Shown one piece after another: positions 8,064 through 51,300 of a DNA stretch of 64,000 nt. Source of the stretch: Ascidiella aspersa. Lineage: Eukaryota. Positions within the stretch are counted from its first letter, which is position 1. Every line of letters starts with the position of its first letter. A program made the translations under genes and the position numbers. The notes under the pieces were generated by a model. It saw only the letters and a program-made list of their open reading frames with translations. It was not told where the DNA came from and did not search any database. The stretch is from the NCBI GenBank assembly GCA_963924565.1, contig OZ004614.1:18290001-18354000 (forward strand), written 5' to 3'.

Positions 8064-8139
8064 AGGGCAATGATGAGCCCAAACCAAAGGGGGGCCCTAG
8101 CAAATTGCTAGCCCCAAAAACCCTGAGGTCACTGAGCCC

Positions 8140-8140
<1 letters not shown>
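8064..8140 (+). ncRNA. Box C/D snoRNA-like (kink-turn) module at the 3' end of family A
   Basis: AGGGC-A-ATGATGA ... CTGA-GCCCT with internal hairpin CTAGC-AAATT-GCTAG; immediately precedes the poly(A). Confidence 0.7.
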
Positions 8141-8185
<45 letters not shown>

Positions 8186-8195
8186 AATCGTCAAA

Positions 8196-10756: not shown

Positions 10757-11143
<387 letters not shown>

Positions 11144-12230
11144 TTATGTTTGTTTATTCGCGTCACTAGGGGAAGCGAATAAAGGAGGAAAAGGACGAGA
11201 AAAACGGGCGAGGCGTACATTACACAACACGGAAAAAATAATAAAAAAAAGGAAAAGAAAGGTAATGGGTAATAACAATGAAAAGCGTTGGACAGAATGG
11301 GCGGCGGGGGTTAATAAATATTCGGAGGAAACAGTGCTAGGTCTCAACAGGGTATGTAGTGTGACGAGGTTACTAGGGAAAGGACAAGAAAAAGGCGCGA
11401 CATGACAATATATTGACCACTAGGAGAGCTAGGGGGCGTTGTGGTGGAAGACCAATAGATAGACAAAATTAACGAAGGCTTGCGTGGCGATGCTTACTAT
11501 AAAACGAGGAGGAGTAATATTGAAACAAGCAAACAAGAGATTAAATGGCGTAGGTAAATAAGTAAACAAGGAAAAGAAAAAAAATGGCGACGGATACTGA
11601 AAAGAATAAAAAGTACAATAAGTAGAAAAAAGAGTGTTGGTCAGCCAATGAGAGCTCAGAGTTTGTAGTGTCTAGGGTTCGGGGAGGGGGGTATGTCCCC
11701 TGGTTCTTCTCCCTGGATTGGCTATTAAGGAGAGCTTTTGCTAGTTCTCTCTCGTTGGTGGCAGTTTGGGTTTTTGCCTCGGACGAGAGCATTTTAGGGG
11801 TAATTCTGAATTTTATTGGGGCGCACAAAGGAGCTTGGTCTTTTGATGGTTGTTTTGCCTGTTATTTGGGCCTGTTCTGAAAAGAACTTGGCCTATTTTT
11901 GGGTTGGATATTTAGATTCTATTTTGCCTATTTTTTCACCTATCCCATTAGGACTGGGTGAAAGTGAGGAGGATTTTTGGTAAGGTGGTGCCGTGAAATT
12001 TAGTTGTTCTAGGTATTGGAGGGTTAATTTTTTGGAGGGCAGCTTTGCCTTGTTGGTTTTGGGTGGTCTAAGTGGGTTTTTTATTTGAAATTGTCGGGGT
12101 TTCTGTTTCCTTATTGTGCGGTTTAAAGTTTTATTGGGTGGGAAATTGGCGGGTTGAAATTGTCGTTTAAGTTTTAACTTTATTGGGGGTGGGGTGGCAA
12201 AGCTGCCGCAGGACGCAACTCACAACGTAC

Positions 12231-15200: not shown

Positions 15201-15653
15201 CCCGTTAAAATCGCCCGCCAAAATGGTTGGGTGCCTCGAATGCACGTGCACGTACAGCGACCCGAAGAAAGCTCTGCGAGCAGCACTTCCTTCGGTTCGC
15301 TGCGGGGCATACACGTTTACGACGTGTATTGTTGAGCCGAAAAGCTGTATATCGACTGCCAGGACCCGCCCGTCTCCGTCGCCACTACGCGCGCCGAAGC
15401 TGAGTGATGGATGCCTAAGCAATATCGCGACCCCGTTCCTCGCGAGAGGCCTCGACAAGGCCGACCAAAACAGGGCTTTATTGGGTTGCCATTCAACACC
15501 CCACGCCATTTCCTCCGCAGGAGAACTGTGCGTCTCCTGCAGAAGAATGACGTGTGCGTCGCTTCCAGAAAGGGAATGAAAAATGGCCGATCGTTTGGCC
15601 GCATCTTTCATTCCCCCGACGTTGAATGTGGTTACTTTAAGGTAAGTAGCCAT
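12231..15653 (-). CDS. Family B ORF2p (1140 aa): APE endonuclease, reverse transcriptase, C-terminal CCHC
   Basis: TFNVGG, LQETH, GDFN, SRLDRFY, SDH; SPGPDG, YRPISLLN, LDFKKAFDSV, GIRQGDPLS, YADD; CLFC..HIFSTC; uninterrupted. Confidence 0.97.
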   Translation of the reverse strand: MATYLKVTTFNVGGMKDAAKRSAIFHSLSGSDAHVILLQETHSSPAEEMAWGVEWQPNKALFWSALSRPLARNGVAILLRHPSLSFGARSGDGDGRVLAVDIQLFGSTIHVVNVYAPQRTEGSAARRAFFGSLYVHVHSRHPTILAGDFNGVENSRLDRLPPSTYPELLAGLIDVCRDLQLSDSFRQLYGDRPFYTRRLNNTQSRLDRFYISALIKPISENGTPNCQSDHDMVTLQIETVPGSRKGKGYWKNNTSTYANAAFREELEKRWEMWSTLHPALFDDKTSWWLHIKQRIKDLNIKHSKLQAVERNKHHVQLQEGVTALWGSLANNPTLLTPYLTLKRQLCTLQRQSARARLLKSRAQGFDWGDRGTKAFFARFAEQRRNTTILELKQGTSQNKTSNNVEMLNIAHSFYTDLYRTQPTDAEAQRSFLAHVPTSLDPLDDTLTRPITGQEVHNAIRQMASGKSPGPDGISTEFYSLYWELIGRDLTDVMNRIHEQGQIPEDMKLGTLTLLHKKQDPSDLGNYRPISLLNTDLKIYTKILATRIKAILERVLHPHQFAAPKRRISDATTLLRDLYYDALGRGTDAYFISLDFKKAFDSVDHAWLYCVMTKMGFPEHFIRVIRSINTDAQSTVLVNGFPTAPFAIGRGIRQGDPLSLFLFLIAATPFSLALQADSSVSGIGIPGRHCIKCPSYADDTTLTLCHPYSVTLAFQKLDRFRDASGLTLNYSKTKGLYTRSAQGPLPPIGWTRSHLSLLGTVIGSGPSVTANWAEHFKTLTDTIKRHARFAMTWNAKSIVTKAKFLPLISYTATVYPLPESLRQRVDDAVGNFITGNSRLHLPIQQLALPFDRGGYKVANIPVYCDLFFMQSIFFYCRHRENDTPTTPGLAMIEYNIGLQLSNLFKLRLRNSHPHAVIPNPFYKHALNLVKKYSFSFDQLVHGSIRTLYLGLVSPNPDVSQRDGPMAPTTLWNNVHHPILSNAAKTFNYRTLFDLLPVSTKFSSISLDPATLCLFCGSRPETTHHIFSTCSTLAPVWKYIEQLINRLTNTATTLTDEITTRLNIPSHLEIYTEHLVYINTLTRHHIWRTRNKIKFEHKPIRPVSAIISAIKRGITQRLNVEHNRLDTTFMSTIQDLRNLLSQ

Positions 15654-15710
15654 GACTACTATTTAGTTTAGGTTCAGCTATCTATCCTAGGTACATCCTA
15701 AGTTGCGTCC

Positions 15711-17081
15711 TTATGCCATGCTTTGCGAAAGCGGCGTGGCCTTCTTCTCGCATTGGGGGCAGACGCTTATGTCTCCCGTGTTTGAAAAAAAATGGCAGCT
15801 GCCGACGCAGCTTTGTAGCCACTGGGGGCAGCCGGTACACTTAGTGGCTTTGCCCGCTAGAGGGACTTGGACGGCCACGCCGCAATCGCAGGTTTCGGTT
15901 AGAGTTTCTAGGCGCTGTGCCTTATGGTTATTTGTACTCTCGTCCGAGCCTGAATAAAACCGCTTAACTGCATCTTTTATGTTGTCGTCGTCCTGGTGCT
16001 GTTCCCCTCCTGTTGAGTCCGTTTCCGATGTGAAAGTGGTTGTAGGTTCGCTTGAGCTGAATTCCGTGGTGACCGATGTGCCCGCGTTCACCGCTAAGGC
16101 GTCGTTTTCAGTGGTGCCCGCGTTCACCGCTAAGGCGCTGTTTTCAGTGGTGCCCGCGTTCACCGCTAAGGCGCTGTTGCTTGCTGTGCCCGCGTTCACC
16201 GCTAAGGCGTTGTTGTCATTGGACCCCTGTTCACCAGGGGCCGCTTTTCCTTTCCCGCCTTCCTCGCTCTCGCTCGGTGGTTGGTCGGTTGGCGGGGGGG
16301 AGGTCCTCTCAGGCGCCTGTTGATGGGAAGGCGGCGGAGGAGGAGGAGGAGGAGGAGTAGGAGGAGGAGGAGGGATGTTGGGGAGAGGAAGGCCTGGCTT
16401 GGGCCATTGTTTCCCGTTTCGTCTGTTGACGGTGGTGTAGCCATCCGTGTTGGATGGCCCTGGTTTGGGGGTTGACGTATGATCCGGCGTTGTCAGCTCC
16501 TGTGATTTCAGGACCTGGCAGTCGTCTTTGTAGTGGCCGAACTTTCGGCATATAAAGCATTGGGGGGGTTGGCCCGTGTACTTTGTCGGGAAGGCCAGCC
16601 CCTCGACCCGGATCGTTTGCGGGATGGGGCTTCTTTTGAGGTCCGCAGTTCTCATTGTATAAGTGGTGCGGCCGTCGTTTAGATGGTTGCGGTCCTTTTG
16701 TCGCTTGTAATCTTTAACTTCTCCGTGCCGGAAATTCAATAGTGAGACTATTTCCTGGATCGGAAATCTTGGCGGGACGTGCGAGACTTCCACCGTAGTG
16801 AACTCGCTTTCATACCGCTTGACGGACTGGACCGCTGATTGGCCGGTTAGGCGGATTACCAGGTCATCGGCGGCTTTTTCGTCGACGCAGGTGAAGTCGG
16901 TGAAGCCTCCTCTGCGTTCGACGATGCCTTCCAGGCGGTTGTAATTGAAATGCACCTTCTTGAGTAGTTCGTATATGAAGTTGCGGGATCTTTTGTCCGG
17001 CAGCTTTGCCACAACTTCTGTTTTTCTTTCAAAGATGGTTCGACTTCTGGCGACAACTTTGTTCCAGCCTGGCTGGGCCAT
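15711..17081 (-). CDS. Family B ORF1p (456 aa)
   Basis: CFICRKFGHYKDDC knuckle, poly-Pro stretch, C-terminal multi-Cys domain (CDC..CTGC..CVGSC..CPQC). Confidence 0.9.
   Translation of the reverse strand: MAQPGWNKVVARSRTIFERKTEVVAKLPDKRSRNFIYELLKKVHFNYNRLEGIVERRGGFTDFTCVDEKAADDLVIRLTGQSAVQSVKRYESEFTTVEVSHVPPRFPIQEIVSLLNFRHGEVKDYKRQKDRNHLNDGRTTYTMRTADLKRSPIPQTIRVEGLAFPTKYTGQPPQCFICRKFGHYKDDCQVLKSQELTTPDHTSTPKPGPSNTDGYTTVNRRNGKQWPKPGLPLPNIPPPPPTPPPPPPPPPSHQQAPERTSPPPTDQPPSESEEGGKGKAAPGEQGSNDNNALAVNAGTASNSALAVNAGTTENSALAVNAGTTENDALAVNAGTSVTTEFSSSEPTTTFTSETDSTGGEQHQDDDNIKDAVKRFYSGSDESTNNHKAQRLETLTETCDCGVAVQVPLAGKATKCTGCPQWLQSCVGSCHFFSNTGDISVCPQCEKKATPLSQSMA
16078..16213. repeat. 36-bp coding tandem repeat (x4) in family B ORF1
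   Basis: Core GTGCCCGCGTTCACCGCTAAGGCG repeated; encodes NxALAVNAGT units. Confidence 0.85.
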
Positions 17082-17655
17082 TGCGGGCTGGGTTGAGGAG
17101 GTGTGCAGTGGGGTGACTGCAGGTTAATGGGGAGGGTATTGGTGGCGTCTTATTGGACGGTTGTCCTCAACGCTTAGGTCGGGTAGTTCTAGCGGGCCTT
17201 GAAAAAGGCCAGGAAAAGGTTTTTCCTTTTGCGCTTGGTAGGATCTGAGGGTTGGGGTTTTTTGGGTTGGCCCACTTACCGTTCCGGCGGCAAAACTCTT
17301 GAAAAACCGAGTAATGCGTTTTTTTCCGGCAACGGGGTGGGACGGGTTGCTGGTACTAAGCCTGTTCAGGGAAATCCCTACGCTCCAAACCTTCGGGGCT
17401 AGGCAGGAGCTTATTCTCTTTTCTTCCTGAATCAGGTAAGTCTGGCAGGATATTGCGCAGATCTTGCTGTCGTGGACGGTTTGTCGGGTCCTTACGGAGC
17501 TCGAAACAACAACCGTTCTGAGTCTGGTCTGAATGACTGACTGCTGACAGCTCTTCGGATATTGTGAAGGATAGAGTTCTTCACTTTGTAATAACTTGAA
17601 ACTGGCTTGCTTGGCTTTGCTTAAAATAGCTTGGCTTTGCTCTGTACACTTGTAC

Positions 17656-17905
17656 TTGTTTCTCGAGTGAAATCGAAAGAATGAAGGCGGGCGGTTTGAA
17701 ACGCCTTTTATAATCCCCACGCCTGTCGAAAAACCGCCCGACGGTTGAAAAGCGCGCGCAGTAACACCCAATCGTTTTTTCCGCGCACTCTCGCACTGCT
17801 CCATTGGCGAAAGCGTCGAGCCGTCATTTGCATCTCTTCCGATCTATAAGCGACGAGAGTGGAAAAACACGCCACACTCTTCGTCGTCGAAAGCTACGAA
17901 GAACC
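17656..17905. promoter_or_regulatory. Second copy of the H2A/H2B divergent promoter, now flanked by retroelements on both sides
   Basis: Essentially identical to 1-242 from position 17664; octamer 17826-17833. Confidence 0.9.
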
Positions 17906-19282
17906 GATTTCACTCGAGAAACGAGAAACTCGAACATACAAGTGTATGACCCAAATATGTTGTCCAAGCCATGGAGCATGGTTGTTTCCCAGGGGAATCC
18001 CCACACCGCCGCAGGGAATCCTTCCCTCGTCGCAGCGCCCCGCAGGAGGGAGGTCTTCTCCCGTCGTACGGAGGTCGTTGCTAAAATTCCAAGCAAGAGG
18101 TCAAGGAACTTCATCTACAGCCTCCTAAAACTGGTGTCGTTCGACACCAACAATCTGGAGGGGATAGTCGAACGAAAAGGAGGCTACACCGACTTCACGT
18201 GCAAAACTGAACAGCAAGCCGAAGAGTTGGTCTTCAAGCTGAAGAGCAGACCCGAGGTCGAGCTCGCAAGGCGCTATGAGAGCGAATATACCAGCGTGGA
18301 AATATCGCACGTGCCACCTCGCTTCGACATCGGTACGCTTATGGCGTACATCCAGAAGAATCACGGCACTGTCCTAGAGGCCAGAAAACTAAAGGACGCC
18401 ATAGCCGGTCTCCCAGACGGGAGAATAAAAGCAGAGGTGCTCACCGAGCACCTGAAACGAAAACCCATCCCGGCAACCATCCGATGCGAAGGACTCACGT
18501 TTCCAGTGAGGTACTACCAGCAACCACAGCAGTGCTTCCACTGCAGAGCCTTCGGCCACATCCGGGCAAATTGCCCGACACGCCAGCCCCCATCGCAGCG
18601 CCCAGCAGACGAGGAACCCGACCCAGCGACAAACTCAGAGAAGACCCCGGAGAACACGCCAACAGACATCTCGTCGGAGAGCGGTGAGAAGACAGAGGCG
18701 GCAACATCATCCAGCATAACGGCGGCCACAGCAGTAACAGCAACAGCAGCATCCGGCAACTCAGCGGCAAACGATGTCCAACAGCCAGAAGAAGACTGCA
18801 CCACCAAACGACAAAGAAGCAGCGGCAACACCCCTCCCGATCACGACCAAAAGCGTCCAAAAGCAGAAGATGACAGGCTTTGCCTGCCGCAGCCCGAGGG
18901 GCCTCCTGTGGACGGGCCAGTGCGCAAATGCCGTGAATGCCTCGAGTGCGACTGCCAAGCACTCGTGGATTTTCCAGAGCCGGGCACACCGACTGTATGC
19001 GACGCCTGCAAAAGGATCTTCCGCTGGTGCGACGAATGTAATTATGCATACGTGTGGCTTCCCAAAAGCCAGAAGTCTTGCCCCACGTGCGGGACTTTCA
19101 TACCTGAAAGCCTCTCACAAACCCTCCCGGGTTGACAGAGGCGGTCTGGAAGCAGGGAACCTGCATAATCATTGTTTGTTTTCAAAGTTATATTTGCATA
19201 TTTGTTTTTCGCCTCGCCCGTTTTATTTCGTTCTTTTTCTTTCTTATTCGTTTTCTGTAATTGATGCGAATAAACCAACATA
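17906..19282 (+). mobile_element. Family C copy 1: ORF1-only non-autonomous element in the H2B 5'UTR
   Basis: Splits GAAGAACC|CTCCTGTCAAAATG; ORF1 homologous to family B ORF1; 3' end similar to the family B 3' end; no ORF2 and no poly(A). Confidence 0.85.
17957..19135 (+). CDS. Family C ORF1p (392 aa), copy 1
   Basis: RRTEVVAKIPSKRSRNFIY aligns to family B RKTEVVAKLPDKRSRNFIY; CFHCRAFGHIRANC knuckle; Cys-rich C-terminus. Confidence 0.85.
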   Translation: MLSKPWSMVVSQGNPHTAAGNPSLVAAPRRREVFSRRTEVVAKIPSKRSRNFIYSLLKLVSFDTNNLEGIVERKGGYTDFTCKTEQQAEELVFKLKSRPEVELARRYESEYTSVEISHVPPRFDIGTLMAYIQKNHGTVLEARKLKDAIAGLPDGRIKAEVLTEHLKRKPIPATIRCEGLTFPVRYYQQPQQCFHCRAFGHIRANCPTRQPPSQRPADEEPDPATNSEKTPENTPTDISSESGEKTEAATSSSITAATAVTATAASGNSAANDVQQPEEDCTTKRQRSSGNTPPDHDQKRPKAEDDRLCLPQPEGPPVDGPVRKCRECLECDCQALVDFPEPGTPTVCDACKRIFRWCDECNYAYVWLPKSQKSCPTCGTFIPESLSQTLPG

Positions 19283-19293
19283 CTCCTGTCAAA

Positions 19294-20814
19294 ATGGCTG
19301 CAAGCAAAGGCACCAAAAAGGCTGTCAATGAAGCGGACCCTCCTCTCCTCGAAGACCGTCCTGAAACTGTCAGCTCTTTCCTCCAACCCCCTGCAACCCA
19401 GCCAGCTGAAGTTTTGGCCACTGATGTGCCCTCAACGTCGCAAGCTCGTCCGAAGATGCTTGCAAACGTCGACCAAGACATCATTGATGCCTTGATGTTC
19501 GACCAATCCTCAGACGTGACTGCACGTTTTGTTCCAGCCCTCAGTCGGGCTATGATCTCGCTGCTGATGCACGAGGTCTACCCGACTATGAGGGACTGGA
19601 TCGACCACCTTGAAGCGATTGTACAAAAGCCGAACGGCTATGTTACTTTCACTTGCACGAAAAGAGAATCTGCTGCCGCCCTGACAGCACTACTACGGGC
19701 GAGGCCCGAATGCAGTTTTGCCGAGCTATTTGATGAAGATCAAATAAAGGCAAAACTGTCATATGTACCTCCGCGAATGCGAAACGACGCCATCAAGAGA
19801 TGGTTTACTCTCAAATATGCCGAGTGCACAAGAGTCAGAATCCTTCGGGATAACGATAAATGTGCCAATGGCAAGAGAGAACTGACGCTGAAAAGCTCAG
19901 AAATCGAGAATAATCCTATCCCGAAGTTCATAAAACTCGGGAAGGCCAAGGTAGCAGTTTACTACCAAGGTCAGCCGGACTTTTGCAATTATTGCAAAGA
20001 GATGGGCCACGACTTACCCTCGTGCCCAAAACTGGCAAAAAAAAAAGAGAAAAAAAGAGAATACGCCAAACAAAAGCATCTCGTCAGAGCAGAGCCACCG
20101 CCTCTGAACGACGAAAATTTTCCTCCTATGGAGGTACTACCAGGAGGCTCTCCACTGCTCGCTGGGATCCCCCCCAGTGCCACTAGCACACCGAACGTGG
20201 TCAGAATATCGCCGAGCAAGAGCGAAAAACGAAGAAAAAGGAAAGAACGAAGAAAAAAAAAGAAGAGACAACAAAGAGAGAAGCGAAAAGAAAAGAAGAA
20301 GGCAAAGAAAAGAAATGATACAACAACGGAGTCATCCTCTTCATCTACCCCCCTCCCAATCAACGATGCCGATCCCGGTATCGAAATGCATTCCTCTCTC
20401 GAGGCCGAGCTCGAGGAAAATGCTTTCATGGCGTTCCATGCCTATGAGAAACCCCTCAATGCCATTCCCATTGGAATTGATCCCGGTTCCGAGAACTCCT
20501 CCCATATATTCTCTTCGAGCGACCCATCGCCACAAGGGAAGAGAAATCGATCTTCAACCACAGAAGGGAGCTCAAAAACACCCGCCCACAAGCCGAAGCG
20601 TCGATTGGTCGACTATACCATAGACGAGATCTCGGCAATCAAGGCCCAAACAGTGACCGGTGGTAACTACACCGGGTACTTTTGCCGAGCATGCCGCAAT
20701 TATTTCAACCCTCTCATGAAGGAGCAGTCAACTCAATGTGGCTGTCCTCTCACATCGAAACAACTCTACAGCGAGCTGCAATGCGAGCTATACGCTCATG
20801 AGTCTACTTTTTAA
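19294..20814 (+). CDS. H2B N-terminus (11 aa) in frame with family D ORF1p (506 aa total; internal Met at 19456)
   Basis: [11 protein letters not shown] then ORF1 similar to family A (KLSYVP, NGKRELTL, CNYCKEMGHDLPSC), with a long K/R tract. Confidence 0.8.
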   Translation: MAASKGTKKAVNEADPPLLEDRPETVSSFLQPPATQPAEVLATDVPSTSQARPKMLANVDQDIIDALMFDQSSDVTARFVPALSRAMISLLMHEVYPTMRDWIDHLEAIVQKPNGYVTFTCTKRESAAALTALLRARPECSFAELFDEDQIKAKLSYVPPRMRNDAIKRWFTLKYAECTRVRILRDNDKCANGKRELTLKSSEIENNPIPKFIKLGKAKVAVYYQGQPDFCNYCKEMGHDLPSCPKLAKKKEKKREYAKQKHLVRAEPPPLNDENFPPMEVLPGGSPLLAGIPPSATSTPNVVRISPSKSEKRRKRKERRKKKKRQQREKRKEKKKAKKRNDTTTESSSSSTPLPINDADPGIEMHSSLEAELEENAFMAFHAYEKPLNAIPIGIDPGSENSSHIFSSSDPSPQGKRNRSSTTEGSSKTPAHKPKRRLVDYTIDEISAIKAQTVTGGNYTGYFCRACRNYFNPLMKEQSTQCGCPLTSKQLYSELQCELYAHESTF

Positions 20815-21126
20815 AAGCCCTCCCTACTTCTCAGATGTTCGAAGATGCCACCTCCAGGTTCTTCAGTTTATGTGAAGACATCTTCGTTCATCCCTTTGGA
20901 TTCCTTTTTTTTCATTGTAAGTATACTTTGCATTGTTTGTTTATGTTTTTGTCTTTCGACAAGAACTCAACAACTTTGTATATATTCCCTTTATTCACTG
21001 TATATTTAACTTGTATTATTTGTTTCGTTTTTTTTCCTCGCAAAACTTTAATAAAACAACGGGCAATGATGCTCCCCTCCCCGGGTGGTGCAGCTGTCAC
21101 CAACACAAACCCGAGGCCCTGAGCCC

Positions 21127-21159
<33 letters not shown>
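19329..21159 (+). mobile_element. Family D copy 1: ORF1-only poly(A) element starting at H2B codon 12
   Basis: Begins after AAAAAGGCTGTCAA; ORF1, short 3'UTR, AATAAA, C/D-like module, poly(A) 21130-21159. Confidence 0.85.
21060..21127 (+). ncRNA. Box C/D-like module, family D copy 1
   Basis: CGGGC-A-ATGATGC ... CTGA-GCCCG; compensatory C-G pair replaces the A-T pair of family A. Confidence 0.65.
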
Positions 21160-21161
<2 letters not shown>

Positions 21162-22515
21162 AACTCGAACATACAAGTGTATGACCCAAATATGTTGTCC
21201 AAGCCATGGAGCATGGTTGTTTCCCAGGGGAATCCCCACACCGCCGCAGGGAATCCTTCCCTCGTCGCAGCGCCCTGCAGGAGGGAGGTCTTCTCCCGTC
21301 GTACGGAGGTCGTTGCTAAAATTCCTAGCAAGAGGTCAAGGAACTTCATCTACAGCCTCCTAAAACTGGTGTCGTTCGACACCAACAATCTGGAGGGGAT
21401 AGTCGAACGAAAAGGAGGCTACACCGACTTCACGTGCAAAACTGAACAGCAAGCCGAAGAGTTGGTCTTCAAGCTGAAGAGCAGACCCGAGGTCGATCTC
21501 GCAAGGCGCTATGAGAGCGAATATACCAGCGTGGAAATATCGCACGTGCCACCTCGCTTCGACATCGGTACGCTTATGGCGTACATCCAGAAGAATCACG
21601 GCACTGCCCTAGAGGCCAGAAAACTAAAGGACGCCATAGCCGGTCTCCCAGACGGGAGAATAAAAGCAGAGGTGCTCACCGAGCACCTGAAACGAAAACC
21701 CATCCCGGCAACCATCCGTTGCGAAGGACTCACGTTTCCAGTGAGGTACTACCAGCAACCACAGCAGTGCTTCCACTGCAGAGCCTTCGGCCACATCCGG
21801 GCAAATTGCCCGACACGCCAGCCCCCATCGCAGCGCACAGCAGACGAGGAACCCGACCCAGCGACAATCTCAGAGAAGACCCCGGAGAACACGCCAACAG
21901 ACATCTCGTCGGAGAGCGGTGAGAAGACAGAGGCGGCAACATCATCCAGCATAACGGCGGCCACAGCAGTAACAGCAACAGCAGCATCCGGCAACTCAGC
22001 GGCAAACGATATCCAACAGCCAGAAGAAGACTGCACCACCAAACGACAAAGAAGCAGCGGCAACACCCCTCCCGAGAACGACCAAAAGCGTCCAAAAGCA
22101 GAAGATGACAGGCTATGCCTGCCGCAGTCCGAGGGGCCTTCTGTGGACGGGCCAGTGCGTAAATGCCGTGAATGCCTCGAGTGCGACTGCCAAGCACTCG
22201 TGGATTTTCCAGAGCCGGGCACACCGACTGTATGTGACGCCTGCAAAAGGATCTTCCGCTGGTGCGACGAATGCAATTATGCATACGTGTGGCTTCCCAA
22301 AAGCCAGAAGTCTTGCCCCACGTGCGGGACTTTCATACCGGAAAGCCTCTCACAAACCCTCCCGGGTTGACAGAGGCGGTCTGGAAGCAGGGAACCTGCA
22401 TAATCATTGTTTGTTTTTCAAAGTTTTATTTGCATATTTGTTTTTCGCCTCGCCCGTTTTATTTCGTTCTTTTTTCTTATTCGTTTTCTGTAATTGATGC
22501 GAATAAACCAACATA
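21160..22515 (+). mobile_element. Family C copy 2 (intact ORF1 21192-22370)
   Basis: Near-identical to copy 1; followed by CTCCTGTCAAAATGGCTGC. Confidence 0.85.
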
Positions 22516-22561
22516 CTCCTGTCAAAATGGCTGCAAGCAAAGGCACCAAAAAGGCTGTCAA

Positions 22562-24419
22562 TGAAGCAGACCCTCCTCTCCTCGAAGACCGTCCTGCAAC
22601 TGTCAGCTCTTTCCTCCAACCCCCTGCAACCCAGCCAGCTGAAGTTTTGGCCACTGATGTGCCCTCAACGTCGCAAGCTCGTCCGAAGATGCTTGCAAAC
22701 GTCGACCAAGACATCATTGATGCCTTGATGTTCGACCAATCCTCAGACGTGACTGCACGTTTTGTTCCAGCCCTCAGTCGGGCTATGATCTCGCTGCTGA
22801 TGCACGAGGTCTACCCGACTATGAGGGACTGGATCGACCACCTTGAAGCGATTGTACAAAAGCCGAACGGCTATGTTACTTTCACTTGCACGAAAAGAGA
22901 ATCTGCTGCCGCTCTGACAGCACTACTACGGGCGAGGCCCGAATGCAGTTTTGCCGAGCTATTTGATGAAGATCAAATAAAGGCAAAACTGTCATATGTA
23001 CCTCCGCGAATGCGAAACGACGCCATCAAGAGATGGTTTACTCTCAAATATGCCGAGTGCACAAGAGTCAGAATCCTTCGGGATACTGATAAATGTGCCA
23101 ATGGCAAGAGGGAACTGACGCTGAAAAGCTCAGAAATAGAGAATAATCCGATCCCGAAGTTTATAAAACTTGGGAAGGCCAAGGTAGCAGTTTTCTACCA
23201 AGGCCAGCCGGACTTTTGCAATTATTGCAAAGAGATGGGTCACGAAATACCCTCGTGCCCAAAACTGGCAAAAAAAAAGAGAAAAAAAGAGAATACGCCA
23301 AACAAAAGCATCTCGTCAGAGCAGAGCCACCGCCTCTGAACGACGAAAATTTTCCTCCTATGGAGGTACTACCAGGAGGCTCTCCACTGCTCGCTGGGAT
23401 CCCCCCCAGTGCCACTAGCACACCGAACGTGGTCAGAATATCGCCCAGCAAGAGCGAAAAACGAAGAAAAAGGAAAGAACGAAGAAAAGAAAAGAAGAGA
23501 CAACAAAGAGAGAAGCGAAAAGAAAAGAAGAAGGCAAAGAAAAGAAATGATACAACAACGGAGACATCCACTTCATCTACCCCCCTCCCAAACAACGACG
23601 CCGATCCCGGTGTCGAAATCAATTCCTCTCTCGAGGCCGAGCTCGAGGAAAATGCTTTCATGGCGTTCCATGCCTATGAGACACCCCTCAATGCCATTCC
23701 CATTGGAATTGATCCCGGTTCCGCGAGCGGTAATTCCTCCCATATATTCTCTTCGAGCGACCCATCGCCACAAGGGAAGAGAAATAGAGCTTCGACCTCA
23801 GAAGGGAGCTCAAAAACACCCGCCCACAAGCCGAAGCGTCGATTGGTCGATTATACCATAGACGAGATCTCGGCAATCAAGGCCCAAACAGTGACCGGTG
23901 GTAACTACACCGGGTACTTTTGCCGAGCATGCCGCAATTATTTCAACCCTCTCATGAAGGAGCAGTCAACTCAATGTGGCTGTCCTCTAACATCGAAACA
24001 GCTCTACAGCGAGCTGCAATGCGAGCTATACGCGCATGAGTCTACTTTTTAGAAGCCCTCCCTACTTCTCAGATGTTCGAAGATGCCACCTCCAGGTTCT
24101 TCAGTTTATGTGAAGACATCTTCGTTCATCCCTTTGGATTCCTTTTTTTTTTCATTGTAAGTATACTTTGCATTGTTTGTTTATGTTTTTGTCTTTCGAC
24201 AAGAACTCAACAACTTTGTATATATTCCCTTTATTCACTGTATATTTAACTTGTATTATTTGTTTCGTTTTTTTTTCTCGCAAAACTTTAATAAAACAAC
24301 GGGCAATGATGCTCCCCTCCCCGGGTGGTGCAGCTGTCACCAACACAAACCCGAGGCCCTGAGCCCGGTAAAAAAAAAAAAAAAAAAAAAAACAAAAAAA
24401 AAAAAAAAAAAAAAAAAAA
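22562..24419 (+). mobile_element. Family D copy 2 (H2B ATG at 22527; frameshift in A-run ~23280; C/D module 24300-24367)
   Basis: Near-identical to copy 1; ORF split into 22494-23339 and 23216-24052. Confidence 0.85.
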
Positions 24420-25780
24420 CAAGAAACTCGAACATACAAGTGTATGACCCAAATATGTTGTCCAAGCCATGGAGCATGGTTGTTTCCCAGGGGAATCCCC
24501 ACACCGCCGCAGGGAATCCTTCCCTCGTCGCAGCGCCCTGCAGGAGGGAGGTCTTCTCCCGTCGTACGGAGGTCGTTGCTAAAATTCCTAGCAAGAGGTC
24601 AAGGAATTTCATCTACAGCCTCCTAAAACTGGTGTCTTTCGACACCAACAATCTGGAGGGGATAGTCGAACGAAAAGGAGGCTACACCGACTTTACTTGC
24701 AAAACTGAGCAGCAAGCTGAAGAGTTGGTCTTCAAGCTGAAGAGCAGACCCGAGGTCGATCTCGCAAGGCGCTATGAGAGCGAATATACCAGCGTGGAAA
24801 TCTCCCACGTGCCACCTCGCTTCAACATCGGTACGCTTATGGCGTACATCCAGAAGAACCACGGCACTGTCCTAGAGGCCAGAAAGCTAAAGGACGCCAT
24901 AGCCGGTCTCCCAGACGGGAGAATAAAAGCAGAGGTGCTCACCGAGCACCTGAAACGAAAACCCATCCCGGCAACCATCCGATGCGAAGGACTCACGTTT
25001 CCAGTGAGATACTACCAGCAACCACAGCAGTGCTTTCACTGCAGAGCCTTCGGCCACATCCGGGCAAATTGCCCGACACGCCAGCCCCCATCGCAGCGCA
25101 CAGCAGACGAGGAACCCGACCCAGCGACAATCTCAGAGAAGACCCCGGAGAACACGCCAACAGACATCTCGTCGGAGAGCAGTGAGAAGACAGAGGCGGC
25201 AACATCATCCAGCATAACGGCGGCCACAGCAGTAACAGCAACAGCAGCATCCGGCAACTCAGCGGCAAACGATATCCAACAGCCAGAAGACGACTGCACC
25301 ACCAAACGACAAAGAAGCAGCGGCAACACCCCTCCCGAAAACGACCAAAAGCGTCCAAAAGCAGAAGATGACAGGCTATGCCTGCCGCAGTCCGAGGGGC
25401 CTTCTGTGGACGGGCCAGTGCGTAAATGCCGTGAATGCCTCGAGTGCGACTGCCAAGCACTCGTGGATTTTCCAGAGCCGGGCACACCGACTGTATGTGA
25501 CGCCTGCAAAAGGATCTTCCGCTGGTGCGAGGAATGCAATTATGCATACGTGTGGCTTCCCAAAAGCCAGAAGTCTTGCCCCACGTGCGGGACTTTCATA
25601 CCGGAAAGCCTCTCACAAACCCTCCCGGGTTGACAGAGGCGATCTGGAAGCAGGGAACCTGCATAATCATTGTTTGTTTTCAAAGTTTTAGTTGCATATT
25701 TGTTTTTCGCCTCGCCCGTTTTATTTCGTTCTTTTTCTTTCTTATTCGTTTTCTGTAATTGATGCGAATAAACCAACATA
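24420..25780 (+). mobile_element. Family C copy 3 (intact ORF1 24455-25633)
   Basis: Same 392-aa ORF; ends AACCAACATA|CTCC. Confidence 0.85.
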
Positions 25781-25784
25781 CTCC

Positions 25785-27114
25785 GATTTCACTCGAGAAA
25801 CAAGACACTAGAACATACAAGTGTATGACCCAAATATGATGTCCAAGCCATGGAACATGGCCGTTTCCCAGGGGAATCCCCACACCGCCGCAGGGAATCC
25901 TTCCCTCGTCGCAGCGCCCCGCAGGAGGGAGAGGTCTTCTCCCGTCGTACGGAGGTCGTTGCTAAAATTCCTAGCAAGAGAACAAGGAACTACATCTACA
26001 GCCTCCTATAAAACTGGTGTCTTTCGACACCAACAACCTGGAGGGGATAGTCGAAAGAAAAGAAGGCTACACAGACTTTACGTGCAAAACTGAACAGCAA
26101 GCTGAAGAGTTGGTCTTCAAGCTGAAGAGCAGACCCGAGGTCGATCTCGCAAGGCGCTATGAGAGCGAATACACCAGCGTGGAAATCTCGCACGTGCCAC
26201 CTCGCTTCAACATCGGTACGCTTATGGCGTACATCCAGAAGAACCACACGGCACTGCTCTAGAGGCCAGAAAGCTAAAGGGCGCCATAGCCGGTCTCCCA
26301 GACGGGAGAATAAAAACAGAGGTGCTCACCGAGCACCTGAAACGAAATCCCATCCCGGCAACCATCCGATGCGAAAGACTCACATTTCCAGTGAGGTACT
26401 ACCAACAACCACAGCAGTGCTTCCACTGCAGAGCCTTCGGCCACATCCGGGCAAATTGCCCCCATCGCAGCGCACATCAGACGAGGAACCCGACCCAACG
26501 GCAAACCTCGTAAACAACATCGCCAAACGCAACAGCAACAACAGCAACAACAATCTCCGGCAACTCAGCGGCAACCTACATCCAACAGCCAGAAGACCAC
26601 TGCACCACCAAACGAACAAGAAGCAGCGGCAACACCCCTCCCGAGAACGACCAAAAGCTACCAAAGGCCGGGATGACAGGCTATACCTGCCACCGTACGA
26701 AAAGCCTTCTTTCCACAACGAAGGGTGCGATTACCTCATCTGCACCTGCACCGGTGTGGTGGAATAATATCCAGAGGCGGACGCACCGACCGTATGCGGT
26801 GAATGTTTGAAGCTCTACCGCATGTGCAATGGATGCAATGAAGCACACGAGTGGCACCTCGAGAGCCAGAAGCTTTTCCCCAAGTGCAAGACCCCCATAA
26901 TAGGCTTCCTCTCGCAAACCCTTCCAGGTTAACAGGGGTGGCCTAGAGTGGGAATCCCGCAGAAAGTCAAATGCGCTATTTTTTGCCTAATTTGCATAAT
27001 TTCGTTAATTTCAATTATTTTTTTATATTCACATTTGTTTTCGTTTCGCCCGTTTTATTTCGTTCTTTTTCTCCCTTATTCGTTTTCTTTAATTGATGCG
27101 AATAAACCAACATA
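25785..27114 (+). mobile_element. Family C copy 4, frameshifted, with variant C-terminus
   Basis: Starts GATTTCACTCGAG; fragmented ORF1; ends AACCAACATA before an H2B start remnant. Confidence 0.8.
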
Positions 27115-27117
27115 CTC

Positions 27118-27147
27118 ATGGCTGCAAGCAAAGGAAAGGCTGTTAAG
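27118..27147 (+). pseudogene. H2B N-terminal remnant
   Basis: ATGGCTGCAAGCAAAGG-AAAGGCTGTTAAG with an internal deletion. Confidence 0.75.
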
Positions 27148-30100
27148 TAATAGCTTTGTTGTACGTGAAGGAGTAGAAGCCGCAAGGCTCAGCAACTGGC
27201 TGACCTTGTTTCTAGTGTTGTTACAGCAAACCTGTCTTACTGCTGCCATTTAGCTTTGAGGCATCGCTGAATACAAAGAGTAGCAGTTGCTTGGATTTAT
27301 TTTCATCGCTCAGCACAACGGCTTGGATTTCATCGTTTCCGTTATATGGAAACATATCGCTTCATAAGGTAACAATTGTTTGTATATTTTTCATTCGCTG
27401 GGACCCCCCGTTCGAAGCTGGATAACAAGAACCTGTAAAGACTTCGATATGAAGCGCTTAAACGTGGACCGAACAGGCGAGGTAACCATCCAGTTTGCCC
27501 CGCCCCAATCGAGACCACAGATTTACGAGCTCATGGAGCAGCATCTCGGCTTTAACTACAAGCGCCACCTTGAAAGCTTCATACAAAAGCCGAACGGGAA
27601 AAACTATTTTGTGCTGCCACGACCAGCAGCAAGCTGTCGAATTAGCTGCCAAGCTAAATACATCGAACGTAGTTAAACGGGCCGACCCCTACGAGGACTC
27701 AATTATCAAGGCAAGGTTTGTTTGTCAGGGACTTTTTCTCTGCCAACGTTGCCCCGTGTAGACTCGCCATTGACGCACCTGATTCAAGGCGCATTAATGC
27801 CGGGAAACTCATCTTAGACTTAGACCGCCAGTCGGTAGAGCTAAAGGCAATACCCAAGGAAATAAAAATGGGCCATAATACCATTATCGGGGTCCATTAC
27901 GATGGCCAACCTGAATCATGCAGGTACTGCAAACAATCTGGCCACGTCTTAGAGACATGCCCCAAATTATTAAAGAAAAACCGCGATAACGAAGAACGAA
28001 AATTGTTAGAAACCAAAAGAGCAGAAGAGGAACGACAACTTGCGCAAAATAGGCAACAAATTGTCCTTGGGGACTTCCTGAACAACGTAGTCTCTCCCTC
28101 ATCGTCTCTTACGAGACCGGAGGACCTCGGTCACATTCTTCCCGCAGAGACCAGCACCCCGGGAGGAAGACGAGTAGTACACAGGAGCGGAAGTCAACGC
28201 ATCAACCCGCCTCCACTGGAGAGCTCTGCTGAAACAACAACTACTTCCAGCTCTGATGATCTGAGCACTGGCTCATCAACAGAGCAGGAGGAGCAGGAGC
28301 AGGAGCAACAGGAGGAACACAAGAAGGAGCAGCGGAAGGAGAAGGAGCAAGATAAGAAGGAGCAGGAGCAGCATGATGAACAACACCATAACACACCGGA
28401 CCCGGACTCGGAACGGGGCAAAGGTACTCAACCTGTTGGCGGCACCAAGAGACCCTTAGAGATCTCGCCGTCCGACACTAGTGGCACATCCAGAAAAATC
28501 CCCTACACCGACTTGGTGTGTCAGGCCTGCCATGGCATCAGTACCAATTGGCCGCAACCTTTTATGCTCAGAATGTGGGGACGATTCCTTCGCACCCCTC
28601 AACTATAGTTGCCCCCCAGTTTTGATAACCCCCTCTTTTAAAAAAAAAATGTCAAAATTTTAAAACCCCTTATCAATAAACAAAATGGCGTCACATTTAA
28701 AAATCGCAACTTTTATTGTAAACGGTTTAACCAATGTAACTAAACGTAATGCTGTCTTCAACTATTTAAAAACTTTAAGCGTCAACATTTTAGTTTTGCA
28801 GGAGACCCACTCGACACCCCAGGTTGAGTCAACCTGGGCTGCCGAGTGGGCTCCGGGTGTAGGTTGTTTCAATTCTTGTCCCTCCGGAGGGTCTTCCTCC
28901 GGGGGTGTCGCCATTTTATTTCCTGCGTCCCCACTTACCTACCCCTTTAGACATTTTCTCAGATCTCACCGGCAAAATTATATCCTGTAATATTAATACT
29001 CTAACCCATACCATACATTTAACCAATATATATGCCCCGTCCGGTAAAATCAATTATTTAGCCAACAACAAATTTTTCGACAACCTTTACCCTTACGTAA
29101 TCGCTCACCTCCATAAAGAAATAGCTAAAAAACTTAACGTAGAAAAATCCCGGGAAATAGCCCAGAAACATTTGGACCTTGCCAAATTACGGGAACAAAT
29201 GAGTCCCCTTAACTACCCCCAAACCTTTGCTACTTTCCAAAAATTAAAACGTGAACTCAACCAATACTACCTGGAAAAATCAAAACAAGACCTTCTAAAG
29301 GCAAAGATTGATAATATGGAAAATAAAAATATATCTAATAAAGCCCTTTACACTCGAGTATTGCCACAAAGAAAAAAACCCATATTAAAGAATTACTGGA
29401 CGAATTTCACCTCCCACATACCACCCCCTCAGAACTCTGCCACCTAGCGGAAACTTTTACCAAAACTTGTACGACTCCCCCCCGATCCCCCAGACCCAAT
29501 ACGACCCCTTCATCCACAATCACACCCCAATTCCCGACCAACTTCACCACTCACTCACCCAACCATTCACCCAACACGAAATTAGAAACATCATTAAGAC
29601 CTTCCCCACCGGTAAAACCCCCGGGCCCGACGGTCTCAGCATCGAGTTTTACACGGAATGCTGGGACCTCATCGTGCCCTATCTCACCCTTGCCCTCAAT
29701 CATGCTTACCTTGCCCCAATCCTCCCCGCCGATTTCACCCACGGAGCCATAAACCCTTATCCCCAAAACCCCCGCTGCCAACACCCTTGCCAACTATCGC
29801 CCCATTTCTCTTCTAAACACAGATCTCAAAATCCTAAACAAAATTTTACACCAATGTATTAAACCGCATTTAAAACACTTTCTCTCACCCTTACAACACG
29901 CACAACCCGGGAAAAATACATCAACTGCATCAACAACCCTCATCCGTGACCTCTACCACCATGCCACCCAGAACATCCTATTTTATATCCCTTGATTTTA
30001 AAAAAGCCTTCGATTCAATCACCCACCCCTGGCTCACCCACATCCTCACCACCCGCAACTTCCCCCCACCCACCCTTCATAAATTACATCCAAACCACCC

Positions 30101-33282: not shown

Positions 33283-33521
33283 TTTTCAAATTATTTGTTT
33301 TGTTTCGAGTCAAATCGAAAGAATGAAGGCGGGCGGTTTCAAACGCCTTTTATAATCCCCACGCCTGTCGAAAAACCGCCCGACACCCAATCGTTTTTTC
33401 CGCGCACTCTCGCACTGCTCCATTGGCGAAAGCGTCGAGCCGTTATTTGCATCTCTTCCGATCAATAAGCGACGAGAGTGGAAAAACACGCCACACTCTT
33501 CGTCGTCGAAAGCACTGAAGA
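33283..33521. promoter_or_regulatory. Third, slightly deleted H2A/H2B promoter copy
   Basis: Matches 1-239 with a ~20-bp deletion; H2B TATA mutated to CAATAA. Confidence 0.85.
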
Positions 33522-34782
33522 TCTTTCGATTTCACTCGAGAAACAAGACACTCGAACATACAAGTGTATGAAGGTTGTACTCCAAATATGATGTCCAAGC
33601 CATGGAACATGGCCGTTGCCCAGGGGAATCCCCACACCGCCGCAGGGAATCCTTCCCTCGTCGCAGCGCCCCGCAGGAGGGAGGTCTTCTCCCGTCGTAC
33701 GGAGGTTGTCGCTAAAACTCCTAGCAAGAGATCTACGCCTCCTGAAATTGGTGTCTTTCGACACCAACAACCTGGAGGGATAGTCGAAAGAAAAGGAGGC
33801 TACACGGATTTTACGTGCAAAACCGAAGAGCGTCCTTAAGCTCAAAAGCAGACCCGAAGTCGATCTCACAAGGCGCTATGAGAGCGAATACACCAGCGTG
33901 GAGATCTCGCACGTCCCACCTCGCTTCAACATCGGTACGCTAATGGCGTACATCCAGAAAAACCATGGCACTGCTCTAGAGGCCAGAAAGCTAAGGACGC
34001 CATAGCCGGACTCCCAGACGGGAGAATAAAAGCAGAGGTGCTCAACGAGCACCTGAAACAAAACCCCATCCCGGCAACCATCAGATGCGAAGGCCTCACA
34101 TTTCCAGTGAGGTATTACCGACAACCGCAGCAATGCTTCCACTGCAGAGCTTTCGGTCACATCCGGGCAAACGCCCCCATCGCAGCACACATCAGACGAG
34201 GAACCCGACCCAGCGACAAACTTCGTGAACATGGATGGCAACGGACACCTCGTCAAAAAGCAAAGAGGAGACGAAAAAAGTGGAAAAAACAGAAGTGGCA
34301 TCATCGTCCAACGCAACAGCAACAACAGCAACAACAACCTCCGGCAACACAGCGGCAACCGACATCAAACAGCCAGAAGACGACCGCACCACCAAACGAC
34401 CAAGAAGCAGCGGCAACACCCCTCCCGAGAACGACCAAAGGCCGAAGATGACAGGCTATGCCTGCCACAGTCCGAGGGGCCTTCTGTGGACAGGCCAGTG
34501 CGTGAATGCCTCGAGTGCGACTGCCAAGCTCTTGTGGATTTTCCAGAGTCGGCCACACCGACTGTATGCGACGCCTGCAAGAGGATCTTCCGCTGGTGCG
34601 ATGGATGCAATTGGGCATACGTGTGGCTTCCCAAAAGCCAGAAGTCTTAGGGGCTCGTAATTTGCATAATCATTGTTTGATTTCAACGTTTTTATTTGCA
34701 TATTTGTTTTCGTCTCGCCCGTTTTATTTCGTTCTTTTTCTCCCTTATTCGTTTTCTTTATTGATGCGAATAAACAAACATA
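33522..34782 (+). mobile_element. Family C copy 5, decayed, in the H2B 5'UTR
   Basis: CACTGAAGA|TCTTTCGATTTCACTCGAG ... AAACAAACATA|CTCCCGTCAA. Confidence 0.82.
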
Positions 34783-46976: not shown

Positions 46977-48313
46977 TTCACTCGAGAAACAAACACTCGA
47001 AGCATACAAGTGTATGAAGGTTCTATTCCCAAGATGATGTCAAAGCCATGGAACATGGCCATTTCCCAGGGCAATCCTCATTTCGCCGCAGGGAATCCTC
47101 CCCTCATTGCAACGCCCCACAAGAAAAAAGTTTTCTCCCGCCGGACAGAAGTCGTCGCTAGGTTCCCATTCAAACGATCAAGAAACTACATCTACAGCCT
47201 CCTGAAATTGGTGTGTTTCGACACAAAGAACCTAGAGGGGATCGTCGAAAGAAAAGAAGGCTACACGGATTTTAAGTGTAAAACAGAAGAACAAGCTGAA
47301 GAAGAGCAGACCCGAAGTCAATCTTGCAAGGCGCTACGAAAGCAAGTACACCAGCGTGGAGATCTCACACGTTCCACCTCGCTTCAAAATCGGTATGCTG
47401 ATGGCATACATACAGAAAAACCACGGCACTGCTCTAGAGGCCAGAAAGTTAAAGGACGCCATCGCCGGACTACCTGACGGACGAATAAAAGCAGAGGTGC
47501 TGACGGAGCACCTGAAACAAAACCCTATCCCGGCAACCATCAGATGTGAAGGCCTCACATTTCCAGTAAGGTATTACCGACAACCGAAGCAGTGCTTCCA
47601 CTGCAGAGCCTACGGCCACATCCGGGCAAATTGCCCGACACGCCCACCACCAACGCAGCACAGAGGAACCCGACCCAGCGACAACTCGGAGAAGACCCCC
47701 GAGAACATGCCAGCGGACATCTCGTCAGAGAGCGAGGAAAAGACAAATAAAGAAGAAAAACCAGAGGAGGCAACATCCTCCAGCACAACAACACCCACAG
47801 CAACAACAGCCTACGGCAACACAGCGGCAACCGACACCAAACAGCCAGAGGACGACTCCACCAAACGACCAAGAAGTAGCGGCAACACCCCTCCCGAGAA
47901 CGATCAAAAGCGATCAAAGGCCGAAGATGACAGGTTATGCCTGCCGCAGTCCGAGGGGCCTTCTGTGGACAGGCCAGTGCGTGAATGCCGTGAATGCCTC
48001 GCGTGCGACTGCCAAGCTCTTGTGGATTTTCCAGAGTCGGGCACACCGACTGTATGCGACGCCTGCAAGAGGATCTTCCGCTGGTGCGATGGATGCAATT
48101 ATGCATACGTGTGGCATCCCAAAAGCCATAAGTCTTGCCCCACTTGCGGGACCTTCATACCGGACAGCCTCTTACAAACCCTCCCGGGTTAATTTGCATA
48201 ATCATTGTTTGATTTCAACGTTTTTATTTGCATATTTGTTTTCGTCTCGCCCGTTTTATTTCGTTCTTTTCCTCCTTATTCGTTTTCTTTATTGATGGGA
48301 ATAAACAAACATA
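46977..48313 (+). mobile_element. Family C copy 7, diverged
   Basis: Starts TTCACTCGAGAAACAA; ORF1 in two frames (47010-47477, 47356-48192); ends before CTCCCGTCAAAATG. Confidence 0.82.
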
Positions 48314-48324
48314 CTCCCGTCAAA

Positions 48325-48360
48325 ATGGCTACAAGCAAAGGCACAAAAAAGGCTGACAAG
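48325..48360 (+). pseudogene. H2B N-terminal remnant (12 codons)
   Basis: ATGGCTACAAGCAAAGGCACAAAAAAGGCTGACAAG. Confidence 0.85.
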
Positions 48361-51300
48361 TAATAGTTGTTGTGAAGGAGTAGAGGCCGCAAGGCCCAGC
48401 AGCTGGCTGGACTTGTCAGGGTTTGTTATTGCCAGCTTTAGACCCCTTTTCTGAAACTGCAGTCTGTTGTTGAGATCTGAAACTGTGCTCACCAGTCAAG
48501 TGAAAGAAGTGCTTTCAATAGCACTCGGATTATTTTCATCGTACCTTTTTTTGGACTATTATCTGCGGAGTGCACCAGCGCACAACACTGGACCGCAAGG
48601 TAACAATTGTTTCACGTTTTTTCTACTATACAGTGGCTCAAAGAGCCCAATAGTTTACAGCCAAAAGCTGCTAGGGAGCCGAGCCGACATTTTGTTTTAA
48701 AATGGCGACAAGCTCGGCAAAAACCTTTAATTAGAAGTATAAGCCACGTGGGGGAAGTGGAGATCCACCAGAAACCGAACGGGCGGACACTGCTATGTTG
48801 CGTTAATGAATATCAGGCCACAATTTTAGCTAACAAGCTTAAAAACCTCGACGTAGTTAAATACACCGAGGTATACCAGGAAAATGTAACCAAAGTCAGA
48901 GTGAGCTTCATCCCCCCACGGATGAAGCCCTCAACAGTTGAAAAGTTTTTCAACTTCAAATATGTTCCGGCAAAACTAAATCGGGAGACTTTAGACTCTC
49001 GCCAAATTCGCTGCGGCAAGATTGTCCTTGATGTGGACAAGAAAAAGTTAGAGCCTTTCGACATACCAAAAGAAATCCGTATGGGTCCCCACACCATCGG
49101 GATCCATTACGACACCCAGCGGGAATGTTGCAGGTACTGCAAAACCCCTGGCCACATCATAGAAGCATGCCCAAAATTAAAGAAGAAGAACCGCGACATT
49201 GCGGAAAGAAAGGCATTGGAAACCCAGAAGAAGAAAGAGGAAGACCACCATAAAAGCCTCCCAAAGCCAACCTTCGGCGATTTTTTCAACCTGGACCATC
49301 AACTCGGAGGCACAGTGGAGGAGGTAAGTTCAACCCCTCTGAAACACCCGGAGGAATTGTCACACATAGGCAAAGCCGACAACTCAAAGTCGGGTACGGC
49401 ATCTCATCAGGCTTCAACATCCTCGAGCGGGACAACGGTCTCGGAGTCGGATTCAGAAAGCGAATCATCATCTCCCTCCCACCAGGAGAAAGAACAGAAT
49501 GAGGAGCGCGAGCAGGAACGTCATCAGGAGAAGGAGGAGCATGAACCACATCAGCAAGAGGGACAACATCACGACACACCAGACCCGGACTTGGAACCGG
49601 GCAAAGGTACAGAATCGGCTGGTGGCACCAAGAGACCTTTAGAGGTCTCCAACACCGATGTGGTGTGTCCGGCCTGCAATGGCACCGCCTCCGTCCACAA
49701 TTTCCATTGCATAGAGTATGGGAATGATTCCCGTGCGGCACTCAATTATAGTTGTCCCACCCCTGATTAACTTTGTGTAGTAAAATGTCATACCTTTAAG
49801 AATTTTCAAAAAGCAAAATGGCGTCTAAACTCAAAATATCAACTTTTAATGTAAATGGATTACAAAACGTTACTACGCAATGCCGTATTTGAATATTTAA
49901 AAACTTTGTCTTGTAATATTATAGTTTTGCAAGAGACCCACTCGACTCCCCAAGTTGTGTCAACCTGGGCTGCCGAGTGTAGGAATTTTTAATTCTTGTC
50001 CCTCCGGGGGAGTCGCCATTTTATTTCCTCACTTACCCCTTTAGATATTTTCTCAGATCTCACCGGCAAAATTATATCCTGTAATATTGATACTCTAACC
50101 CATACTATTCATTTAACCAATATATATGCCCTGTCCGGTAAAAACAATTACTTAGCCAACAACAAATTTTTCGACAACCTTTACCCATACGTAACTTCCC
50201 CCCATCCCACCATCCTGGTTGGAGACTTTAATTGCGTTCTCCAGTCCCACCTTGATAAATACCCCCCAGAACCATCCCGTCACCCCAACAAACCCTTAAT
50301 TACCCTGTTAGATACCCTTACCCTCACCGACACCTTCCGAACCCTTAACCCGTTGTACCCATAACTCCCAATCCCGCCTTGGCCGTTTTTATGCAACCCC
50401 TAATATCACCCCCGTTAATCACACCTTCACCCCAACCCCGTTTTCAGACCACGACCTAGTTAACCTCACCCTTGACATCCCCATCGCACCACCCAGAGGC
50501 TACGGACATCCGTACCCTTTTACCCACCTCGACCCTTTACCCACCTCGACCAAATTCCACTTAACATTAAATTAAAATCCTCCCCGCCGATTTCACTACG
50601 GAGCCATAACCCTTATCCCCAAAACCCCCGCTGCCAACACCCTTGCCAACTATCGCCCCATTTCTCTTCTAAACACAGATCTCAAAATAACAAAATTTTA
50701 AACCAACGTATTAAAAAAACGCATTTAAGACACTACAACACGCACAACCCGGGAAAAATACATCAACTGCATCAACCCTCACCCGTGACCTTTACCACCA
50801 TGCCACCCAGAACACCCCCCTCCTATTTCATATCCCTCGATTTTGAAAAAGCCTTCGATTCAATCACCCACCCCTGGCTCACCCACATCCTCACCACCCG
50901 CAACTTCCCCTCACCCTTCATAAATTACATTCAAACTACCCAAATTTCAGCCACCTCCGCCATTTTAATGAATGGCTTCCCAGCAACCCCGTGGCGATCA
51001 GAAGAGGCGTGGTGAGGCAAGGCGACCCGCTGAGTCTCACCCTCTTCCTGATCGCCCTCGACCCCCTCCTCAAAAATATTCCCCATACGAATAATCACCC
51101 CCTACCTCACCCACCGCACCTTGGACACCCCTTCTGATAACCAAACCCAAATTATTTAATACCACCTAGGTACCCCTGTCCAAAAAATACGATTTCTTCA
51201 TTAAAAATAACCTTCCTCATACTATTTTTCCCTCACCATATTGTCAACAAATTTGGACTTTTATAAATAAATATAATCCGACATTGACTGAACTCACGTG

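Follow-up and report, generated by a model that had tools for sequence, protein, structure and literature searches.

Our analysis provides strong evidence that the family C retroelements in the H2B 5'UTRs of an Ascidiella aspersa histone array begin with leader sequence taken from a different gene, H2A. As we read the sequences, ancestors of C, like its autonomous relative, family B, were probably transcribed from the H2A promoter and captured the H2A leader, and C was subsequently inserted into H2B repeatedly. This reading, which draws the transcription start, the mobilisation in trans and the change of target from observed sequence relationships and junctions, has in our estimate a probability of roughly 0.78.

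The window (the whole stretch of 64,000 nt that was analysed) is set in a tandem histone array on contig C8. The unit order is H2B, H1, H4, H3, H2A, with H2A on the minus strand and divergent from the next H2B, the promoter between the two genes measuring ~220 bp. Uninserted units of ~4.6-4.7 kb are located directly upstream of the window. Comparison of an empty unit with the window revealed three insertions, all sense-oriented and all in 5'UTRs: A in H1 (~15 nt from the ATG), B in H2A (10 nt) and C in H2B (~11 nt). The host and element features needed for the comparison are the following (coordinates of the window):

1731-8183, sense to H1: family A, a poly(A)-tailed LINE of the L1 superfamily in the H1 5'UTR (ORF1 2145-3428, APE 3518-5119, RT 5491-7488)
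11145-17650, minus strand: family B, an autonomous LINE 10 nt before the H2A ATG (ORF1 17081-15711, ORF2 15653-12231)
11145-11220, minus strand: 3' tail of B, ~75 nt, common to B and C by alignment
17651-17683, minus strand: host H2A leader upstream of B, +1 to +32 plus the preceding C
17705-17712, minus strand: H2A TATA box, its first T 30 nt 5' of the A of CATTC
33283-33325, minus strand: variant H2A leader of a truncated H2A remnant (L009)
210-253, plus strand: empty H2B 5'UTR, the target site without C
17845-17905, plus strand: H2B TATA at 17845; H2B leader from ~17875, ending where C is inserted

Leader positions are numbered from the A of CATTC (+1). The spacing of 30 nt between the TATA box and this base is canonical for a start site, and the A is the predicted H2A cap site. 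Six intact uninserted H2A genes (L002-L007, C8:18248831-18289977) share an identical 42-nt 5'UTR that contains the entire leader. The 25 nt at 33522-33546 are identical to +3 to +27 of these empty alleles, an exact match that is highly improbable by chance in 64 kb. The earlier note had placed an H2A leader at 17683-17656 on the minus strand and nested parts of it at the C starts 33522, 17906, 25785 and 46977; every string was recovered at its coordinates, and the six empty genes contain the quoted leader. Its claim that the leader is host sequence thus holds, on account of these six alleles; the remnant at 33283-33325, which it had used as the host control, is itself a diverged variant allele.

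The C copies of the window and the elements joined to them are:

17906-19282, plus strand: C with an open 392-aa ORF1, leader from +9
19283-21159, repeated at 22516-24422: poly(A) element joined to the H2B start (tail of the H2B 5'UTR, then H2B codons 1-14)
21160-22515, plus strand: 5'-truncated C immediately after a poly(A) run, in a tandem composite unit
24423-25780, plus strand: C in that tandem composite
25785-27114, plus strand: C directly behind the preceding C copy, leader from +9
33522-34782, plus strand: C with a degenerate ORF1 in an H2B 5'UTR, leader from +3
33522-33546, plus strand: outer captured H2A leader (+3 to +27), the 5' end of this C, adjoining the H2B leader
33549-33562, plus strand: inner, older, 5'-truncated leader copy, with B-homologous 5'UTR from 33563
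46977-48313, plus strand: C of a diverged subfamily, leader from +12

Taking all copies together, the 5' ends of C are nested within the leader at -1, +1/+2, +3, +4, +9, +12 and +20, those at +4 and +20 belonging to array copies elsewhere than in the window. Three copies that lie outside the array, two of family C and one of family B, have their 5' end at the predicted cap site. The C copy on contig C1 (L054) starts exactly at CATTC. The one on contig C2 (L055/L017) is framed by a perfect 16-bp target duplication, and the unit runs from leader base 1 or 2 to the terminal ..ACATA; the duplication therefore encloses leader and element together, as in 5' transduction. The B copy on contig C4 (L056) likewise starts at CATTC; the complete leader follows and then B, and the sequence preceding CATTC is unrelated. 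At the 5' ends of these three copies no H2A promoter sequence is attached. The leader is part of the transposing RNA. Support from L018, L024 and the family B copy outside the array is weaker, as no target duplication was found for them.

The internal order of the C 5' end is also informative. The outer leader extends to +27 and is followed by two extra bases, by a truncated and slightly different leader (33549-33562) and then by B-like AGTG.., the same sequence that follows leader position +32 in B. The joint between leader and element in C lies at most 5 nt from the B insertion site. The inner leader resembles the variant that heads older B-like copies outside the array (L087, L084), and the H2A remnant has this same variant, so the captured leader tracks host alleles over time. 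An outer and an inner leader are the pattern expected of two successive cycles of insertion and transcription at the H2A site, and they imply that C resided there twice.

The H2B-resident C copies all lack leader positions +1 and +2, and the full-leader copies found outside the array can therefore not descend from any of them. C RNA with an intact leader must thus have had another source, most simply at the H2A site. Of the 18 occurrences of the leader that the assembly contains, not one combines H2A promoter, leader and C, and no such copy was found among the C matches either; the source is thus missing from this assembly. The proposal of the earlier note that C RNA is, or ancestrally was, transcribed from the H2A promoter while sitting at the B site accordingly stands in part: starts at the cap site, the position of the joint and the matching B copies speak for it, and the genome search returned no H2A-resident C. 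That the elements would thereby acquire S-phase or embryonic expression, as the note supposed, is conjectural.

This absence is also what an internal promoter would predict, the leader being by now an intrinsic 5' module with the initiator CATTC and needing no H2A-resident master. Several subfamilies outside the array, old ones as well as young, have leader-like heads, the leader start is Inr-like, and the joint specific to C creates a DPE-like AGACA near +28. However, all H2B-resident C copies start at +3 or later, lack the initiator and cannot regenerate L054 or L055; the variants of the captured leader follow host H2A alleles, and the nested outer and inner leaders are a prediction of re-insertion at H2A. 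We therefore consider an internal promoter improbable. Distinctly less probable still is that reverse transcriptase switched templates from element RNA onto abundant H2A mRNA, as has been proposed for the snRNA heads of SINEU and for U6-L1 chimeras. Recurrent 5' gain of gene-derived heads is documented for SINEU (PMC4494074), and C does carry two successive leader pieces, but a switch onto an mRNA of several hundred nt would hardly place the joint within 5 nt of the B site; moreover, in B the same leader is contiguous with its genomic position, and H2A coding sequence is never included.

The 3' junction of C in H2B is constant (..ACATA/CTC.., the slash marking the junction), whereas the 5' junctions vary on either side, in the captured H2A leader as well as in the leader of H2B, at least three of them being distinct. 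A fixed 3' and differing 5' junctions point to several independent target-primed events at one nick, and the H2B specificity of C is thus real. By the same token, and although H2A and H2B are divergent neighbours in an array with segmental duplications and tandem composites, it is barely conceivable that a DNA-level inversion, gene conversion or unequal exchange across their promoter moved leader and element into H2B, given the target-primed signature of these junctions, the 16-bp duplication around leader and C on another contig, and that no breakpoint joining promoter sequence to the leader was seen inside H2B.

Once in H2B, C was probably also read from the H2B promoter, since the H2B leader heads two copies that lie outside the array: L031 on contig C7, a 150-bp C derivative with a target duplication of ~15 bp, and L018 on contig C3, a C copy that starts ~30 nt after the expected TATA position. 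The tandem composite 17906-25780 combines C, the H2B start and the poly(A) element in one retrotransposed unit, which implies read-through. The H2B leader itself recurs outside the array at C4:18895139, C1:14741710, C4:13651309, C6:18018730 and C9:11866691. On C6 it is followed 1.6 kb downstream by an ORF2 of the poly(A) class (C6:18020384), which suggests that poly(A)-class elements carry the H2B leader as well.

The 3' end required a correction. The earlier note had regarded the terminal AAAC(A/C)AACATA of C as flank of the B site, copied into H2B together with the 5' flank. Seven C copies and B (11155-11145) do indeed end in this sequence. Empty H2A alleles, however, read ...AAACAAATACA/ATCGC at the B insertion point, i.e. 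..ATACA/ATCGC, in contrast to the ..ACATA that ends every B and C copy, whether inside the array or not. Plain host flank was hence rejected as an explanation of the 11-mer, and copying with both flanks fails on the 3' side: the 11-mer is an element-borne terminus of B and C. As copies outside the array carry it too, it is reverse-transcribed from element RNA. At 9 of its 11 positions it agrees with the bases directly preceding the B insertion point; this imperfect repeat could be the fossil of a target duplication, or else a mimic of the target.

At several loci, family B is inserted in sense directly behind +32 of the H2A leader. Its ORF2 contains the Pfam domains Exo_endo_phos (APE), RVT_1 and zf-RVT; the best PDB match is human L1 ORF2p (E 3e-52), the nearest named protein is a pol-like protein of Phallusia mammillata (62% identity), and the distant matches are plant L1-like reverse transcriptases. 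Relatives of B are present in other assemblies (P0002-P0007). APE, RT and a C-terminal CCHC motif together with an ORF1 carrying a nucleic-acid-binding module place B in the L1 superfamily (L1/Tx1 clades). Of the poly(A) or A-rich 3' end typical of that superfamily, B and C show no A-run and end in ..ACATA; the neighbouring families A and D do have poly(A).

C is 1.3-1.4 kb long and encodes only an ORF1 homologue without RT, 54% identical to the ORF1 of B over the first 178 residues. Among copies with open frames dN/dS of this ORF is ~0.2, which argues that the protein was under constraint in an active lineage. A single ORF2 type in the genome, that of B, has the ~75-nt tail that C shares. A search of the genome for a C-type ORF2 found none, the next ORF2s being 35-38% identical and of the poly(A) class. 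Lacking RT and sharing its 3' tail with an autonomous element of the same genome, C has the features of a non-autonomous LINE partner. A classical SINE was ruled out by the length of 1.3-1.4 kb, the 392-aa ORF and a head that is a Pol II mRNA leader, as opposed to a Pol III head. L087 (C5:7148358) and L031 (C7:2028596) are very short derivatives made up of a leader head and a B/C-type tail, with coding sequence scarce or absent; the family thus has SIDE- or SINE-like offshoots.

The sequence of events we propose is as follows. B, standing in sense after +32 of the H2A 5'UTR, would be transcribed by Pol II from the H2A cap site without needing a promoter of its own, and its RNA would therefore begin with the H2A leader. 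C, as an ORF1-only relative with a B-type tail, would presumably borrow the ORF2 protein of B type. Its ancestors would have resided at the H2A site at least twice and acquired first the inner, older and now truncated leader and later the outer one, which corresponds to the current allele. Target-primed reverse transcription would then have brought leader-bearing C RNAs, more than once, to a single fixed nick site in the H2B 5'UTR, ~11 nt upstream of the ATG, variable 5' truncation producing the nested leader starts, and transcription from the H2B promoter would have followed.

The nick sites of the two families differ (B, /ATCGC; C, /CTCC), and mobilisation in trans alone leaves the H2B specificity of C unexplained. 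Possibly, one endonuclease tolerates both sites, each located 10-11 nt before an ..AAAATG start; equally to be considered are a contribution of the ORF1 protein or the RNA to targeting, and a C-specific ORF2 that is missing from the assembly. Family A in the H1 5'UTR shows a third histone gene targeted in the same manner. As a tentative extension, which we hold to be rather doubtful, a guild of L1-superfamily elements might divide the 5'UTRs of replication-type histone genes among its members (A at H1, B at H2A, C at H2B and a poly(A) class at the H2B start codon), depending wholly on host Pol II promoters, with the targets of B and C set by the ORF1 protein or the RNA and not by the common ORF2 endonuclease. 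If true, this would be a new way of retargeting a LINE.

Several observations on the array stand beside this. The ends of the H1, H2A and H2B 5'UTRs (8184-8198, 11132-11144 and 242-256) share a similar ..TC(N)..CAAAATG motif, and the insertions in the three 5'UTRs all lie 10-15 nt 5' of the ATG; motif and spacing may be a common recognition feature. In the element at 19283-21159 the 14 H2B codons are in frame with an ORF1-like CCHC protein (ORF to 20814), followed by poly(A), and the element appears to borrow both the start codon and the promoter of the host. At ~27115-27160 and ~48314-48370 another element class is fused to the H2B coding sequence after ~10-14 codons (..AAG/TAATAG..), and these joints mark a second insertion hotspot within the H2B N-terminus. 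Elsewhere on contig C8 (3960676-3996067) every unit of a tandem array with a period of ~1.9 kb holds a 19-mer with two mismatches to the H2A leader, a likeness that is probably coincidental.

Expression was assessed in a single RNA-seq run of the same species label (X4, ~6% of it read), in which no reads fell on B, C or D, the library being probably poly(A)-selected and the elements tailless. Only uninserted H2B mRNA (joint 17904 to 19283) was represented, which suggests that occupied units are quiet in this sample. The absence of reads from C-occupied units recalls the way in which rDNA units occupied by R2 are silenced.

On this reading, the captured leader preserves in the DNA the point at which transcription of the element begins, and it makes parasitism on the Pol II promoter of an mRNA gene concrete and testable. 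B and C, with the same tail, different ORF1s and targets only a few hundred bases apart, amount to a natural experiment on LINE target specificity; the pair is also of interest for the engineering of site-specific insertion. A further question is by what means occupied units are tolerated or silenced in a histone array, in the manner of R2-bearing units in rDNA.

Known targets of site-specific LINEs are rRNA, snRNA, tRNA and spliced-leader genes as well as telomeres. In our literature search, no LINE specialised for the 5'UTR of a protein-coding histone gene came to light. SLACS, CZAR and CRE insert a few nt into the multicopy Pol II spliced-leader genes of trypanosomatids and probably start at the host +1; their RNA would then, as proposed here, begin with host leader nucleotides, but the product of their host genes is a small non-coding RNA, and no leader-bearing derivative of theirs is known to have shifted to a second gene. 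The hybrid R2/R1 SIDEs of Drosophila are non-autonomous as well and join a 5' end suited to one site to a tail that serves at a different one; they are, however, non-coding internal deletions, whereas in C an ORF1 under selection has been retained, with only 54% identity to the ORF1 of B. R1 and R2 themselves also lack a poly(A) tail. Like B and C they are site-specific and sense-oriented; they lack their own promoter and are co-transcribed with the target gene (28S rDNA), as we propose for B and C, and co-transcribed target sequence aids precise integration (PMC4494074; PMC12192640). In contrast to the Pol I rRNA target and the ribozyme release of R2, the elements described here occupy Pol II histone 5'UTRs and the 5' end of their RNA would be the host cap site; also, R2 uses a restriction-like endonuclease and not an APE-type ORF2 of the L1 superfamily. 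In 5' transduction by L1 and SVA, such as the SVA subfamily with a MAST2 exon, the element is driven by an upstream host promoter, and 5' sequence of the host is passed on as a stable component of a subfamily (PMC4494074). Those events are accidental, affect single loci and concern dispersed elements, whereas in the histone array capture recurs and is tied to a dedicated insertion site. SINEU and the Tx1-clade LINEs Keno, Mutsu and Dewa offer L1/Tx1 LINEs specific for multicopy genes and non-autonomous partners with recurrently added, gene-derived heads (PMC4494074); SINEU is short and non-coding, in contrast to the constrained ORF1 of C, whose head is an mRNA leader ending at the insertion site of its partner. 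Closest in logic are thus the co-transcription of R2/R1 combined with 5' transduction, the SINEU/Tx1-type systems being a further parallel, and what sets the B/C system apart is a target in the 5'UTR of Pol II histone mRNAs together with a leader-bearing coding derivative that, on our reading, changed its target.
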